A stretch of 63,703 nucleotides of DNA, the filler included, from Hausera hauseri (Eukaryota), in NCBI GenBank assembly GCA_046269625.1. It is 12 parts of 12 records of this genome, joined end to end, with 100 filler letters (N's around TTAATTAATTAA, not from the genome) between each part and the next. Parts side by side here need not be neighbours in the genome. Positions count along the whole stretch, not along the records: positions 1 to 4,794 come from JBJURY010434472.1; 11 more parts are not named here. One strand, written 5' to 3'. Numbering within the stretch: the stretch's first letter is position 1; each line of letters begins with the position of its first letter. The translations under genes and the position numbers were made by a program. This document shows positions 1 through 4,794 of the stretch, piece by piece. The notes below the pieces were generated by a model that saw nothing but the letters and a program-made list of their open reading frames with translations, did not search any database and was not told where the DNA came from.

Positions 1-1107
1 CGACTGATTCACAACTTCAACTCGCAGTTAACGTTATCACGTTTCCAAACGTTTCAATAAGCTTCGACTGTTTCAACCGTTTCAAAAATTTAGTTTTCAA
101 GCTGTTCTCAACAATGTTTTCAAAAATTTACAAGTTCGAAAATGTGACTTTTGGCTTCGTATATATACAAGTTGCCTCATGCAGCTGACCGCCTCATTTC
201 CATGTTCAAATAATTAATTGACAATTTAAATTGGTTATTAACAAGTTTGTTAATAAATCTACTGATTATTCCAATAAATAACTGATTATCAATAGTCCAT
301 ATACACTGTTCACATAATAAATAATATGTACAATTAAATGTGCAAATAATCAATTATATACAATACCGAACAATAGTTAATAATCATTATTTACATTTAT
401 TCTTTCCCGTGACTGCACTGACTTAATATCAGTATGTTCATGACGCTATTCACGAAACTGTACATCTCTCTCTCTCAACAAGGATTAAAACAAATAACGA
501 ACTATTAATCCGCATTTCAAACACCAAAGTGAATTTACATGCAACATGCAATTTTTCTGTCATTTGGACATCAAAAGTTAATTTAATTTTAGGTTATTGA
601 CGTCAGCCTTCAATGAAATGTCAGTTGATTGAACAATATTCAACTGTTTTCTCATGTAATGCTTTGATATCTATGGTTTTATTCTATTATTTTTGGAGCG
701 TGACTAATTATTTCGAACAGATATTCATGTTGAATTGTCTTACTTAAACGGTTTGATATCATTCATTCTTCTAGATGTTGAAAAGTACATTGTGAACTAT
801 AAATTCATACAAAAGTTTCAGCCCATTTCTTTGAGTTAGATTATTGATTGTACGTGAATAACTTACAGGAGCATAATTATTCTTATATGATTGTAATAGA
901 ATTATTGCACATTCCCAACATTTGTATAACGTCCAAGCAACATAATTATATGTATATCAATTAATACAAAATCATTAATTGTCGTGATTTAACGGACTTT
1001 AAGTTAATATCGGAAACAAAGAATTTGTATTGGGAAGGTTAGATTGAACCTATTTAATAAAAATTTTACAGCTACGCCATCGGTTTAGTAGAATATACTT
1101 TTACAAA

Positions 1108-2044
1108 ATGAAACAACTTCAAGGTGTGAATTATTTGAAAACATATTTTTGTAAGTCTTACATTAATAGATCAAATGAAAAGTATATTGGGAATATTTTA
1201 TACTCAAAAAACGTTGGAATCGGGCATGAGAGCCCTTCAGACAATATTACATTATTGACAACTACTGCTGGACTTCGTAATTTTCAAATTGCTTTACAAC
1301 CAATATTCTCAAGACTGTTCAATTATGAACGCGATAAACAGATTTTAAAATCGTGCAAGTCCAACAGTAATATTGTTCACTCCTGTGTTGAACCAAAGCA
1401 CGATTTAACTAAATCCCACAAACTGAAAAAGGCATTTTGTTCAGTTCAAAATGACACAATCCGGCTGTTATCGAATTATTCTGGTTTGAAACAGATAAAT
1501 AGCAATATTTCAAATTCCCGAAGGCATCAGAGTGGAAAGAGTTTAAAAATACGAATTGTAATAAGAAGAAACTTTGTTGAAAGAGATGATGACAAAATAA
1601 AAGTCAGACATGTTCCGAGGCGATTCAGGAATCAGGATGTTGAGGATCAGAATATTGATTTATCTGAAGGTGAGTCACTAAATAGTATATTCAATAGAAG
1701 AATGGAACCTAACAGAGTATGATTATTTAGAGATTAGTACAGAGATCGATTCAATGGATCTGAAGAATGATTATCACTATAAAAATCAAACTAAATTTGT
1801 TCAGAAAAGTTCTAGATTAAGTTCATTAGAAAGCTATTATTATGATCTCGGTGGTTAAAAAATGAAAATTAAAGAACTTACTTCAGATTTTGAATTAAGT
1901 TCGAAATTTGGTCCAATGGACGATTTCGATTACAATAAGAACGTAGAAACCACCAAAACCACACACTGGTACTTCAAGTCGGACAAACATGAAAATGAAA
2001 AGAAAAGATTATTCAGAAATCAGTTCCAGAATATGTTCACTTGA
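1108..2044 (+). pseudogene. Disrupted 5' extension of the tau-like gene (further degenerate repeats)
   Basis: After ORF 1108-1722, another frame reads SSRLSSLESYYYDLGG*KMKIKELTSDFELSSKFGPMDDFDY. These are degenerate SK.GS.D units interrupted by frameshifts and a TAA. Confidence 0.5.
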
Positions 2045-4121
2045 TAGTTTCTGTCGCAATCAAGGAGGTGGTCAAAATCAAATTTTTCAAGAAAAGAAAG
2101 CCCACAAAAATGTTCCTTCAAAGGTTGATTCAATGGACAATTATTTCCTCATTTCTGGAAGAGAAAAATTTAAAATTCTTGACGGAAAGTCACGTTATGC
2201 AGATGCTAAATCGAAGGTCGACTCGATGGATAATTACTATCATGTTCCAGGAAGAGAACAGAAAAAACACGTTTTTCACGAAAATGTGGATAATAGGTCG
2301 GTTCTGTCGAAACTCTCATGGCTAGATAAATATTTCCACGTTCCCGGGAAAAGAAAAAACAAAATTGAAGTCGAAAAGTCAGACTATTCAAATGCCAGTT
2401 CAAGGTTTGGTTCAATGAACAATTACTATTACGTACAAGGAGGAAATCAAAACAAAGATTTTCATGAAAAAGTGAATCAAAAGCCTGCTCATTCAAAAGC
2501 TGGATCACTGGATAATTATTTCCATGTTCCTAGTAGTGGAAAACTGCAACTACAAGAAGGAAAATCAAATTACTCAAATATCAGTCCAAACATGGGTTCA
2601 TTTGATAATTATAACAATATTCCAGATGGAGAACAAAAAAGTGTATTTGAAGAAAGATTAGATTCTAGCAGTTTTCCGACGGAACTGGATTTTTGGGACA
2701 ATTACTTTTATGTGCCTGATGGAGGTATGAAAAAATCAATTGATGAAAGATCTAGTTGTTCAGATACTCTATCAAAGATAGGTTCGTTGGACAATCACGA
2801 TCATAGCCTAACTGGTAAACAAAATAGAATATGCGAAGTGAAGTTAGATTCCAGTCATGAATCTGTTAAAGCAGGGCCTCTTGACTGCTACTACCATATT
2901 CCAAAAAGTTTGCAGACCCAGATTACCAAAAACAAACTTGATTATAATCAAATTGTGGCGAAAGTAAGATCAGTAGACAATTGTCATCGTCCTAGAAAAA
3001 TTGTACAGTGTAAAATTTTTGATGAAAAACTAGACTATAGTCATGTACCAGCAAAGGTTGGATCGCTTGAAAATTTGCGTCACATTCCAGGAGGAGGACG
3101 ATCTAAAATTTTCAGAGAAAAACTTAATTATTCGCATGTACAGGCAAGAGTAGGATCAATGGTTAATGCCCGACATACCCCAGGAGGAGGAAAGCTTAAA
3201 ATATTTCGAAGAAAAGTTGATTATAGTCGTATTCCTGCAAAAGTTGGATCACTTGTAAATTTATGTCATATCCCAGGAGGGGGAGAGAAGAAAGTTTTTG
3301 ATGAGAAAGTTAAATATAGTCATATTCCTTCACGTGTCGGGTCACGTATTAATCTACATCATATTCCAGGAGGAGGTAAGAATAAAATATTCGACGAAAA
3401 ACTTGATTATGGTCATGTTTCATCGAAGGTTGGTTCATTAGATAATTACTACCATATACCAGCAGGAAGAAAAAATAGAATCTTTAACGAACGACATGAT
3501 TATAGCCATGTTCCTTCGAAAGTTGGTTCATTAGACAATATTAGTCACGTTCCTGGTAGTGGAAAAAATAGAATCTTTTACGAACAACATGACTATAGCT
3601 CTGTTTCTTCGAAAGTTGGTTCATTAGACAATATTTGTCACGTTCCAGGCTGTGGTAAAAATAAAATATTTGATCAAAGATCTTCGTATTCAGATGCTAG
3701 TTCAAAGATAGGCTCTTTTGACAATTCTGATTATATTCCCGGAGGTGGACAAAGTAAAATCTGCGAAACCAGACAAGATTATAGTTATGTTCCAGCAAAG
3801 GTTGGGTCGTTAGATAGCTTCAGTGTACCTGGTGGGGACCAAAAGAAAGTATATGAAGAAAAATCAGAATATGCTGACATAAGTTCTAAGGTTAATTCTG
3901 TGGATAGCTATAATAATGTTCCTGGGAGAACAAAAAGCAAACTGTTTCCCGAAATTACGGAATACAAACAGTCCTTGTCTCAAGTTGAACCATTGAATAT
4001 TTACCTCCATGTTCCTGAGGATGATAAACCGACGGTAAATGAACAAAACTATAAAGAACCTCTTGACAATCATTATCTTGTTCCAACAGACGAGAAACAT
4101 CGGCATTCAAAGAAGAGGTAA
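1989..4121 (+). CDS. Tau/MAP2/MAP4-family microtubule-binding-repeat protein with ~22 tandem 31-aa repeats, intronless
   Basis: 710-aa ORF built almost entirely of 31-aa units, e.g. KLDYSHVPAKVGSLENLRHIPGGGRSKIFRE, matching the tau consensus (V.SK.GS..N..H.PGGG). I count 22 full units and one partial by eye. Confidence 0.9.
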   Translation: MKMKRKDYSEISSRICSLDSFCRNQGGGQNQIFQEKKAHKNVPSKVDSMDNYFLISGREKFKILDGKSRYADAKSKVDSMDNYYHVPGREQKKHVFHENVDNRSVLSKLSWLDKYFHVPGKRKNKIEVEKSDYSNASSRFGSMNNYYYVQGGNQNKDFHEKVNQKPAHSKAGSLDNYFHVPSSGKLQLQEGKSNYSNISPNMGSFDNYNNIPDGEQKSVFEERLDSSSFPTELDFWDNYFYVPDGGMKKSIDERSSCSDTLSKIGSLDNHDHSLTGKQNRICEVKLDSSHESVKAGPLDCYYHIPKSLQTQITKNKLDYNQIVAKVRSVDNCHRPRKIVQCKIFDEKLDYSHVPAKVGSLENLRHIPGGGRSKIFREKLNYSHVQARVGSMVNARHTPGGGKLKIFRRKVDYSRIPAKVGSLVNLCHIPGGGEKKVFDEKVKYSHIPSRVGSRINLHHIPGGGKNKIFDEKLDYGHVSSKVGSLDNYYHIPAGRKNRIFNERHDYSHVPSKVGSLDNISHVPGSGKNRIFYEQHDYSSVSSKVGSLDNICHVPGCGKNKIFDQRSSYSDASSKIGSFDNSDYIPGGGQSKICETRQDYSYVPAKVGSLDSFSVPGGDQKKVYEEKSEYADISSKVNSVDSYNNVPGRTKSKLFPEITEYKQSLSQVEPLNIYLHVPEDDKPTVNEQNYKEPLDNHYLVPTDEKHRHSKKR

Positions 4122-4794
4122 TGACTGATATAGTTTAATTGGGGATGGGGTCACATAGCGTATATACGTTCGGGTGGTGGTTAACTGAAGTACAAGAGGA
4201 CGAATAAGACAATTTTAATGTGCAATTAAACTATTGTGGACTTCCGTGGAGCTCAAACAAGCAGTTATTTGAAAAAGTAGATCAATGGAGTTAAACATTG
4301 GATTTTTGGGTACTAATTTGGAGATCAATGGAACAAACTTTGTTTCATTTTGAAATGAAAACATACAACGTACGGCAGCTTTACTTTTAGACATCAAATT
4401 CCTGCGGAAAACAATTTTCACGACAATCATGTTGAAGAAATTCATTTGTGACATTTTACAAACATGTAGCTTCAGCCTTTTAGACGACAGAACTTTGAAT
4501 TTTTAGCTCAAATTGAAATTTTCCGATTCAATCAAGAAAAAGTTCTATAAAACATGGATTTAATGAGTTCACTGAATCTTACTTTTTAATCAAAACGTCA
4601 TAGCCAATTTTCTACTAAGTTGAAAAATATTCAGTATGATTTAAAAGCAATCTCGTAAATATTTAACAATTTTTGGCAAAAATTGATTTTTTTGTTTATT
4701 TAGTGTATTAGTATAATTTTCTCCCACATTTAAAAGGTTAGTAGGATTTTAAAGCAAAGAAGAAGCACAAGTTATACTTGAGTACTACTTCGTT

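Follow-up and report, generated by a model that had tools for sequence, protein, structure and literature searches.

A tau-like open reading frame with about 22 predicted microtubule-binding repeats in a mixed-sample assembly

The window analysed here is the whole stretch of 63,703 nucleotides, and its first 4,794 nucleotides, a single contig, carry an open reading frame which, judged by its sequence, belongs to the MAP2/tau/MAP4 family and has about 22 repeats, all in a single exon without interruption. Our preferred reading, to which we give a probability of about 0.68, is that this is a genuine coding exon, which purifying selection has kept open since its microtubule-binding region was anciently expanded to at least 22 repeats.

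The reading frame and its repeats

The reading frame and its parts are as follows.

1989-4121, plus strand: intact open reading frame with TAA stop, 710 aa, MAP2/tau/MAP4-family, almost wholly repeats
2028-2960, plus strand: repeats R1-R10, degenerate, with the strict 31-aa period retained
2961-3887, plus strand: repeats R11-R20, the canonical core, with KXGS and PGGG
3888-4118, plus strand: repeats R21-R22 (degenerate), partial 23rd core PLDNHYLVP and short basic tail HRHSKKR

An earlier note on this DNA had described the frame as almost entirely composed of 31-aa tau repeats and had proposed the Pfam Tubulin-binding model as a check. The observation was confirmed: PF00418 matches the 710-aa product with E = 3.3e-108 and 353.6 bits, against a curated gathering score of 27, and ten stretches each exceed this cut-off individually. 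The open frame spans 724 codons from stop to stop, and the first repeat begins 13 residues after the start Met at 1989. Residues 14-695 form 22 head-to-tail units of about 31 residues, with the K-V-G-S-L-D-N core starting at residues 14, 45, 76, 107/108, 139, 170 and so on to 604, 634 and 665. The spacing is 31 residues except for single +1 and -1 indels, which give a 32-residue and a 30-residue unit, and R22 has only 24 residues, being shortened by the partial 23rd core, which starts at residue 689. A rebuilt repeat HMM, trained on 305 units of database relatives, finds 17 units when i-E is limited to 1e-3, 19 at 0.05 and 21 at 1, so that the earlier estimate of about 22 stands, with 22 from the recurrence of the core and 17-21 from the HMM. 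TRF reports the 93-nt period, but only over the better conserved central part (3144-3671). A higher-order period of several units was rejected, as lag analysis shows just a weak lag-2 signal.

Only R11-R20 are canonical, with the consensus KVGSLDNxxHIPGGGKNKIFDEKLDYSHVPS. The 12 [KR]xGS (KXGS) motifs and five exact PGGG motifs (six PGG) are concentrated there and are lost from most of R1-R10, R21-R22 having lost PGGG as well; the columns conserved across units are K1, G3, S4, D6, N7, H10, P12, G13-15, K18, I19, F20, K23 and Y26. R12-R15 align without gaps to microtubule-bound tau R2x4 (PDB 6CVN chain D) over 136 residues, with E = 7.6e-36 and about 45% identity. The whole product has a pI of 9.2 and a net charge of +24, contains 5.5% Tyr, and has neither of the hexapeptides VQIVYK and VQIINK.

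AlphaFold2, run with a 40-sequence alignment, gives a mean pLDDT of 46.2 and a pTM of 0.25, and 562 of the 710 residues score under 50. Secondary structure is limited to three short helices (residues 306-315, 319-330 and 361-364), and no beta-solenoid or other folded repeat domain is seen in the model, so that such a fold was rejected. The protein is thus predicted to be intrinsically disordered and moderately basic. Its net charge of +24 over 710 residues, together with several acidic N-terminal repeats, is expected to be less favourable to tubulin binding than that of canonical tau repeats.

The two halves of the array are sufficiently different that perhaps only the ten or so canonical repeats R11-R20 bind microtubules, with R1-R10 acting as a non-binding projection or spacer arm, or as some other binding site. 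The effective valency would then be about ten, like that of known multi-repeat relatives. R1-R10 have mostly lost PGGG, score 4.6-34 bits with the HMM compared with 40-50 bits for the core, and include several units with a net charge of zero or below (R7 and R8 are both -4); moreover the sole confidently predicted helices (residues 306-330, pLDDT 76-88) lie at the boundary of the degenerate and canonical halves. We regard this limited binding as possible, with the odds clearly against it, since R1-R10 retain the exact 31-aa period and a frame as clean as that of the core, and also S-x-D-N-x-x-H-V-P and D-Y-S (in the degenerate units generally, S-[LM]-D-N-Y-x-H-V-P and D-Y-S), which would be needless in a pure spacer.

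Age of the array and the sequence around it

Nucleotide identity between units is 55-75%, with none above 75%. Between core units pS is 0.4-0.8 and pN 0.2-0.35, which corresponds to dN/dS of roughly 0.15-0.5 with synonymous sites near saturation; these values compare repeat units of one reading frame rather than species, because two large protein searches returned no orthologue above about 50% identity. A recent expansion is ruled out by these identities and by the near saturation. The frame contains one stop in 725 codons (the terminal TAA), while the other five frames contain 24-85; the probability of finding no stop, calculated from base composition, is 6.5e-26, and none of 3000 simulated arrays that had decayed neutrally to the observed divergence was still open. 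These results indicate that the array is old and under purifying selection on its frame. R12-R18 resemble their neighbours, R2, R4 and R6 are alike, and R7 resembles R16, a pattern that fits internal amplification, one of the two origins offered in the earlier note. The 93-nt unit would thus have been duplicated repeatedly within the gene, long ago, to give at least 22 tandem 31-residue repeats. The other suggested origin, a retroposed paralogue, is not supported: there is no A-run of eight or more anywhere in the contig, a candidate intron is present, and no second copy or multi-exon parental gene was identified in the assembly.

The sequence on either side of the array contains the following features.

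1-640, no strand assigned: interspersed repeats in two stretches (1-445 and 469-640), of which the assembly has at least 23 further copies, 65-96% identical (most 72-88%)
1108-1669, plus strand: ORF1, candidate first coding exon; the reading frame continues to a stop at 1720-1722 (204 aa)
1670-1730, plus strand: candidate 61-nt intron, phase 1, with donor AAG/GTGAGT, acceptor TTTAG/ and CTAAC about 18 nt before the acceptor
1742-1946, plus strand: relics of two to three further repeats (EIDSMDL, RLSSLESYYYDLGG, KFGPMDDFDY), codon starts = 2 mod 3
1856-1858, plus strand: in-frame TAA of the upstream repeat frame, where the PGGG turn would have its third G
1947-1949, plus strand: AAA run; here the upstream repeat frame falls out of register with the 710-aa frame
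4225-4230, plus strand: ATTAAA, possible polyadenylation signal about 100 nt past the stop
4673-4794, no strand assigned: end of a high-copy element, probably an LTR, with at least 40 copies at 76-92% identity

The relics are far more degenerate than the main array, with weak HMM support (E 0.02-0.3) and a register that is clear by eye. The candidate intron would connect ORF1 to their frame, its phase consistency being a matter of arithmetic only. ORF1 is basic (pI 10), rich in Ser, Asn, Lys and Arg, and contains 2.5% Pro, and no proline-rich flank was identified beside the repeats. Its open frame of 224 codons is longer than any in 1000 Markov simulations. It matches no Pfam family and no database relative, and does not resemble the N-terminal domains of 120 tau-like matches. 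The gene probably has, or had, a basic upstream exon at 1108-1669, joined through the 61-nt intron, and the earlier description of the gene as intronless and lacking a projection domain is now doubtful on both counts.

Between ORF1 and the 710-aa frame there are one stop and one frameshift, so that the locus could be newly dead. The ancestral gene would on this account have comprised ORF1, the intron and about 25 repeats, the nonsense codon at 1856 and a 2-nt deletion at 1947 would be new, and the 710-aa frame would be the part that has not yet decayed; the long functional past of such a gene would account for the signature of selection. Both lesions do interrupt the repeat-bearing frame. They are, however, confined to about the first 11% of the putative second exon, and the 2.1 kb that follows has none, an arrangement with a chance of about 0.01 if lesions were uniformly distributed (our own arithmetic). 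The relics, being so degenerate, suggest a leader that has long been relaxed more than fresh decay. Comparison with the variant in sequencing run X1 is informative in both directions. Region 1468-2221 differs from it by 4.5-9%, with mostly non-synonymous changes, which speaks for recent inactivation; ORF1 shows 14 non-synonymous and six synonymous differences, which is near neutral, and the variant has a 2-nt insertion within the candidate intron. The X1 contig nevertheless has two extra A at 1947 (AAAAA rather than AAA), which puts the upstream repeat frame and the 710-aa frame in register, and thus restores the frame in this alternative haplotype. At a depth of 3-5x, the stop and the frameshift may be low-coverage errors, or they may be allelic. 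The sole run found to carry the array sequence is not on record as RNA, a point in favour of a dead locus, but overall we consider recent inactivation unlikely. If the preferred reading of a genuine coding exon is correct, the product in this haplotype would start at Met 1989, unless the lesions at 1856 and 1947 are errors or allelic.

Downstream, a possible splice donor (GTAATG, 4118-4123) overlaps the stop; no coding sequence was found 3' of it in the last 670 nt of the contig, and the contig contains no Rfam family or tRNA. Reading frames for Ty3/gypsy-like gag and RT lie on contigs neighbouring the high-copy element, and the depth of this element in run X1 is about 300, compared with 3-5 elsewhere. 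A search with the gag frame as query found no relatives, and an Atlas search with the RT fragment gave no taxonomic information.

The assembly and the source of the array

The assembly consists of 909,086 contigs with a mean length below 1 kb, and contains at least seven different animal mitochondrial COX1 genes (59-83% amino acid identity), which implies a mixture of organisms. By our own reading, one of these is fish-like, two are heterobranch-gastropod-like, and the others are arthropod- or annelid-like. Random contigs have a GC content of 0.35-0.64 (most 0.36-0.48), whereas the flanks in the window and the contigs sharing their repeats have 0.26-0.37 (mostly about 0.30). Given this difference and the mixed COX1 set, the marker genes of the assembly cannot be tied to the array contig, which from its composition comes from an AT-rich eukaryote within a mixed sample. 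Group-specific repeat HMMs score marginally best with fungal profiles (472 bits summed, compared with 379-428 for animal groups), a margin too small to assign a kingdom. No database relative was found for the flanking reading frame or the transposons, so that the array might be the sole tau-family gene of a poorly sampled AT-rich eukaryote lineage.

Contigs from run X1, in which the array contig has a coverage of about 3-5x, tile 2551-2850 and 3240-4259 with 0-1 differences; X1 may be the assembly's own sample, so that this tiling is not independent confirmation. Although the fragmented, mixed assembly, the low depth and the lack of X1 cover at 2881-3200 would allow for an over-expanded array or for a chimera pieced together from several loci or organisms, an artefactual repeat number is very improbable, because units at most 75% identical, with a longest exact repeated word of 29 nt, leave an assembler nothing to collapse or expand, a chimera would hardly keep one frame and one 31-aa register over 2.1 kb, and the array has uniform composition along its length and a single copy in the assembly.

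Possible function and comparison with known tau-family proteins

In tau-family repeats, the KXGS serine is a target of MARK/PAR-1 phosphorylation. Kellogg et al. 2018, as summarised in PMC13039856, place tau along one protofilament, its repeats matched one to one with tubulin dimers. By analogy, the protein described here may lie along the outer ridge of one protofilament in the same way, and at one repeat per dimer the ten canonical repeats would have a footprint of about 80 nm and all 22 a footprint of about 175 nm. So many repeats would be expected to give very high avidity and a long dwell time, and the protein could thus staple or stabilise long-lived microtubules lengthwise; phosphorylation of the MARK/PAR-1 type, on its 12 KXGS serines, would probably control its release. 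The first ten repeats, which are degenerate and Tyr-rich, would probably bind more weakly, or form a spacer or regulatory arm. A more ambitious suggestion, which we put forward as doubtful, is of a giant disordered tau with 22-25 in-register repeats tracking one protofilament for about 175-200 nm, in which a high-affinity canonical C-terminal half is combined with an N-terminal half, Tyr-rich and binding only weakly, with its own function, for example as a tunable tether, lattice-spacing sensor or length ruler.

Work on how affinity, dwell, footprint and envelope formation depend on repeat number in tau-family MAPs has mainly used engineered constructs and the 3R and 4R isoforms. With its roughly 22 repeats, this natural protein widens the known range (3-13) nearly twofold, and provides a long-selected natural gradient from canonical to degenerate units. 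It offers a test of the model of one repeat per tubulin dimer, of how avidity scales with repeat number, and of aggregation in long arrays that lack VQIVYK-type hexapeptides. For the present, the low-coverage mixed assembly restricts how far it can serve this purpose.

Vertebrate tau, MAP2 and MAP4 have 3-4 repeats, one per exon. Notothenia tau has seven (PMC4815063). The background of 3-5 repeats assumed in the earlier note is therefore incomplete, as proteins with 8-13 repeats are already annotated, but its claim of a repeat count beyond that of known relatives is upheld: among the best matches of a phmmer scan over 1.84 billion representatives the highest count is 13. The annotated cases have 13 (Lytechinus), 11 (Clavelina, Lingula), 10 (Nucella, Rhizopus, Irineochytrium) and 8 repeats (Gigaspora). 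Many described orthologues with similar counts would have spoken against that claim; relatives with 8-13 repeats do exist, but none of the best matches comes near 22, none exceeds about 50% identity, and a scan of metagenomic contigs found no relatives. Thus 22 appears to be a new extreme among the proteins searched. PF00418 arrays of 8-13 repeats are widespread across invertebrates and early-diverging fungi, and to our knowledge have not been studied so far.

The array shares with vertebrate tau, MAP2 and MAP4 (PF00418; 6CVN) the 31-residue unit, KXGS...N..H.PGGG, the linker K-I-x-x-x-K-L-D-x-S, predicted disorder and an overall basic charge. It differs from them in having 22 units rather than 3-4, in a single exon, and also in being Tyr-rich, in lacking the two hexapeptides, and in that half of its units are degenerate. 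Expanded PF00418 arrays are shared with Lytechinus pictus MAP2-like XP_063952560 (13 repeats), Clavelina lepadiformis LOC143466172 (11), Lingula anatina tau (11) and Nucella lapillus (10), which are 43-49% identical to the core of the array. These proteins have N-terminal projection domains of 340-1400 aa and at most 13 repeats, all canonical, and at no more than about 50% identity none is an orthologue.

In early-diverging fungi, namely Gigaspora, Racocetra, Cetraspora and Paraglomus (8 repeats), Rhizopus (10, in a fused gene model) and Irineochytrium (10), arrays of 31-aa repeats similarly start near the N-terminus, and no long projection domain precedes them. The AT-rich context and the short candidate intron with CTAAC are also fungus-like. 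However, fungal units read H-[IV]-P-K-G-G and D-F-S-N-V where those described here read H-I-P-G-G-G and D-Y-S-H-V, and identity to the fungal proteins, at about 44%, is no higher than to those of animals.

Family members without a projection domain do exist, as a spiralian and metagenomic set of small proteins: Lineus longissimus XP_064643782 (321 aa) and the metagenomic P0135 (445 aa, 11 repeats) and P0139 (495 aa). Like the array, they are made up largely of repeats (60-76% of their length) and include degenerate units of the form S-L-[DE]-N-x-x-Y/H-x-P. They have 30-aa units, a conserved linker Trp (xxWxxxxK[VI]GS) and at most 11 repeats, whereas the protein described here has a 31-aa period and carries Tyr where they have Trp.

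The repeat array and its reading frame

The reading frame studied here lies within an open frame of 724 codons, and is assigned by Pfam to PF00418 (Tau and MAP protein, tubulin-binding repeat; E=3.3e-108, with 10 stretches passing individually).

1989-4121, plus strand: ATG-initiated ORF of 710 aa
2961-3887, plus strand: canonical repeats R11-R20, consensus KVGSLDNxxHIPGGGKNKIFDEKLDYSHVPS

The heptad K-V-G-S-L-D-N recurs at aa 14, 45, 76, 107/108, 139, 170 and onwards to 604, 634 and 665, giving 22 units (R1-R22) of 31 residues each. The exceptions are one unit of 32, one of 30, and R22, of which only 24 residues precede a partial 23rd core (PLDNHYLVP, from aa 689), after which the stop comes. 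With a repeat HMM, seeded with core units of the ORF and rebuilt with 305 units from database relatives, 17 units are detected at i-E<=1e-3, rising to 19 at <=0.05 and to 21 at <=1. The suggestion in the earlier note, that about 22 repeats fill the ORF, is thus borne out by heptad spacing and by the repeat HMM. R1-R10 and R21-R22 are degenerate: they retain S-[LM]-D-N-Y-x-H-V-P and D-Y-S, while PGGG is mostly gone and some are acidic. The protein has a pI of 9.2, a net charge of +24 and 12 KXGS motifs, whose serines are of the class that MARK/PAR-1 kinases target in tau. The amyloid-nucleating hexapeptides VQIVYK and VQIINK are absent from it.

Over 725 codons the array frame contains a single stop, which is the terminal one, compared to 24-85 in each of the other five frames; with this base composition, 724 codons would all be open by chance with a probability of 6.5e-26. 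In a neutral simulation, where a consensus unit was repeated 22 times and mutated to the observed per-unit divergence, none of 3000 arrays remained open (mean 32 stops). Nucleotide identity between units is 55-75% within the core and 40-65% elsewhere, and synonymous differences approach saturation (pS 0.4-0.8 vs pN 0.2-0.35; dN/dS approximately 0.15-0.5). The only indels that disturb the 31-residue period are a single +1 and a single -1. The units are old, and the open frame, the simulation, the excess of pS over pN and the kept period together bear the signature of long-term purifying selection on a translated product.

Predicted structure and function

When aa 321-603 (R11-R19) were compared with 6CVN chain D, the tau R2x4 construct modelled on microtubules, R12-R15 aligned without a gap over 136 residues (E=7.6e-36). 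According to Kellogg et al. (2018), as summarised in PMC13039856, one repeat in this model spans three tubulin monomers over intra- and inter-dimer interfaces, and four repeats correspond to four dimers along one protofilament. Extending one repeat per dimer, with an 8-nm dimer repeat, the footprint would be about 80 nm for the 10 canonical repeats and about 175 nm for all 22. The most likely function would be to stabilise long-lived microtubules lengthwise, with high avidity. That the degenerate N-terminal half is a spacer, and does not bind tubulin, is a possible but less likely reading.

AlphaFold2, using a 40-sequence alignment, gave a model with hardly any secondary structure and a mean pLDDT of 46, in line with a disordered chain like that of tau and not with a folded solenoid. 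The sole confident structure is a pair of helices at aa 306-330 (2904-2978; pLDDT 76-88), located in R10 at the junction of the degenerate and canonical halves, where PKSLQTQITKN replaces the PGGG turn.

Upstream sequence and contig ends

The start of the array does not coincide with the start of the ORF, as repeat relics lie upstream. Beyond them is a further reading frame.

1108-1722, plus strand: ORF1, 204 aa, basic (pI 10)
1670-1730, plus strand: candidate intron, 61 nt, phase 1, splice consensus at both ends
1742-1946, plus strand: two to three further, badly decayed repeats, in register (codon starts = 2 mod 3)
4225, plus strand: sequence ATTAAA

The relics translate as EIDSMDL..., RLSSLESYYYDLGG*KMKIKELTSDFELSSKFGPMDDFDYNKN, with weak HMM support (E 0.02-0.3). 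Between the relics and the ORF lie two lesions: a TAA at 1856-1858, exactly where the third G of a PGGG turn would be, and a shift of frame close to the AAA at 1947-1949. In a 5-9% divergent contig from X1, the single public sequencing run in which the sequence occurs, this AAA is AAAAA, which places the relic and ORF frames in register. The X1 variant differs by 9% over 1468-1798 and by 4.5% over 1863-2221 (0-1.4% over the remainder of the contig), with 2-nt insertions after 1713 and after 1946, and could represent either a haplotype with local hyper-divergence or a paralogue that was not assembled. The lesions might be read as wholesale pseudogenisation of a uniformly decaying locus, which is improbable: both fall inside the first ~11% of the putative second exon, with a probability of about 0.01 under uniform decay. 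Because of this clustering, we favour a relaxed 5' leader, allelic variation or low-coverage errors.

An assembly artefact, raised by the earlier note as a concern, is argued against by the limited identity between units (no pair above 75%), the longest exact repeated word within the array (29 nt), and the tiling by X1 contigs, which cover 2551-2850 and 3240-4259 with 0-1 differences (2881-3200 is uncovered; X1 may be the source sample). The array is present only once in the assembly.

The open frame of ORF1 (224 codons) exceeds all 1000 Markov simulations (maximum 194). It matched no Pfam family, no relative in the database search, and none of the N-terminal domains of 120 tau-like matches. 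ORF1 would at best be a weakly constrained, disordered-type domain, since its 14 non-synonymous and 6 synonymous differences from the X1 variant are near neutral. The candidate intron begins at a perfect 5' splice consensus (AAG/GTGAGT, 1667-1675) and ends at TTTAG (1726-1730), with CTAAC ahead of it. By arithmetic, its excision would bring ORF1 into phase with the repeat frame; an X1 2-nt insertion falls within it, compatible with a non-coding sequence. GTAATG overlaps the ORF stop and could serve as a splice donor, and the final 670 nt of the contig contain no coding sequence after the stop. There is no A-run of >=8 anywhere in the contig, and so no hallmark of retroposition. The proposal that the gene is retroposed, intronless and without a projection domain is therefore not supported, given this lack and a candidate intron that would link ORF1 to the repeats.

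Interspersed repeats make up both contig ends, and come from the same AT-rich organism as the array.

1-445 and 469-640: two interspersed repeat families, 23 other assembly matches, 65-96% identity, most 72-88% (L041-L049)
4673-4794: 3' end, high-copy element, at least 40 copies, 76-92% identity, X1 depth ~300 (L021-L039)

Contigs sharing these repeats are all AT-rich (GC 0.26-0.37; random assembly contigs 0.35-0.64, most 0.36-0.48), and one (L048) carries a reverse-transcriptase fragment, RVT_1-like in an Atlas search. The 3' repeat belongs to a Ty3/gypsy-like element. Neighbouring contigs encode a Ty3/gypsy-like gag (PEPTINRNLRSRS...NVYDFKNFKIDIEKFNGQPDK...), for which no database relative was found within the length range searched.

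Origin and relatives

Positions 1-4794 are a complete contig (C434472) of a very fragmented assembly (868 Mb, 909,086 contigs), in which the typical contig is far richer in GC than this one. COX1 genes from at least seven different animal mitochondrial genomes, all apparently intact, are present in the assembly (C677661, C233294, C444356, C688771, C31113, C272174, C215189; L009-L012, L016-L018), with 59-83% mutual aa identity and TGA = Trp; one adjoins an ND2 of fish-like type, and two resemble those of heterobranch gastropods. The assembly thus represents a sample that is mixed or contaminated, and says nothing on the taxon of this contig. Further PF00418 exons in it come from other organisms, some vertebrate-like (GC 0.45-0.48; none looking human) and some spiralian-like with Trp-type linkers.

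C142338:2377-2730, minus strand: tau-like frame, 124 aa, three Trp-linker repeats, cut by the contig end (L015/L019); LIWKVEPKVGSLDNIHHQPK...

This frame is similar to those small tau-like proteins of spiralians that consist of repeats throughout, and its contig, being GC-richer and microsatellite-bearing, is from another organism. Fungal repeat profiles give marginally the best scores for the 710-aa ORF units, and the candidate intron, short and with CTAAC, is fungus-like. The ORF is as close in identity to its animal relatives as to its fungal ones, and no kingdom is assigned for this reason.

The ORF had 507 matches in a word-indexed search and 748 at E<=1e-3 when 1.84 billion representatives were scanned in full with phmmer; neither search found a relative more than ~50% identical or aligned beyond ~355 residues. 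Repeats were counted with one HMM in the best 261 matches, where 4-6 is typical.

Highest repeat counts among the best 261 matches
13 repeats: Lytechinus pictus MAP2-like
11 repeats: Clavelina, a second ascidian-like Logan protein, Lingula, one metagenomic protein
10 repeats: Nucella, Rhizopus, Irineochytrium
8 repeats: Gigaspora, Racocetra

Although the PF00418 family is generally regarded as metazoan, arrays of 6-10 repeats are also present in Glomeromycotina, Mucoromycotina and chytrids (database proteins P0005-P0008, P0123, P0125, P0128, P0161, P0186), and no paper on such arrays in early-diverging fungi was found in the literature searched. That literature gives 3-4 as the canonical tau repeat number, with 7 in an Antarctic fish (PMC4815063) and 3-4 in planarian paralogues, two of them enriched in testes (PMC6743461); no description of more than 13 repeats was found in it. 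The 22 repeats are the highest count detected among the proteins searched, ~1.5-1.7 fold above the next. The earlier note was right about a hyper-expanded tau-family array and overstated its uniqueness: its background of 3-5 repeats is too narrow, given the relatives with 8-13, and an all-repeat build without a projection domain, as proposed for the 710-aa ORF, is also found in small proteins such as the 321-aa tau-like protein of Lineus. It is concluded that the array is real, and is the longest detected in these searches of a kind already known with 8-13 repeats.
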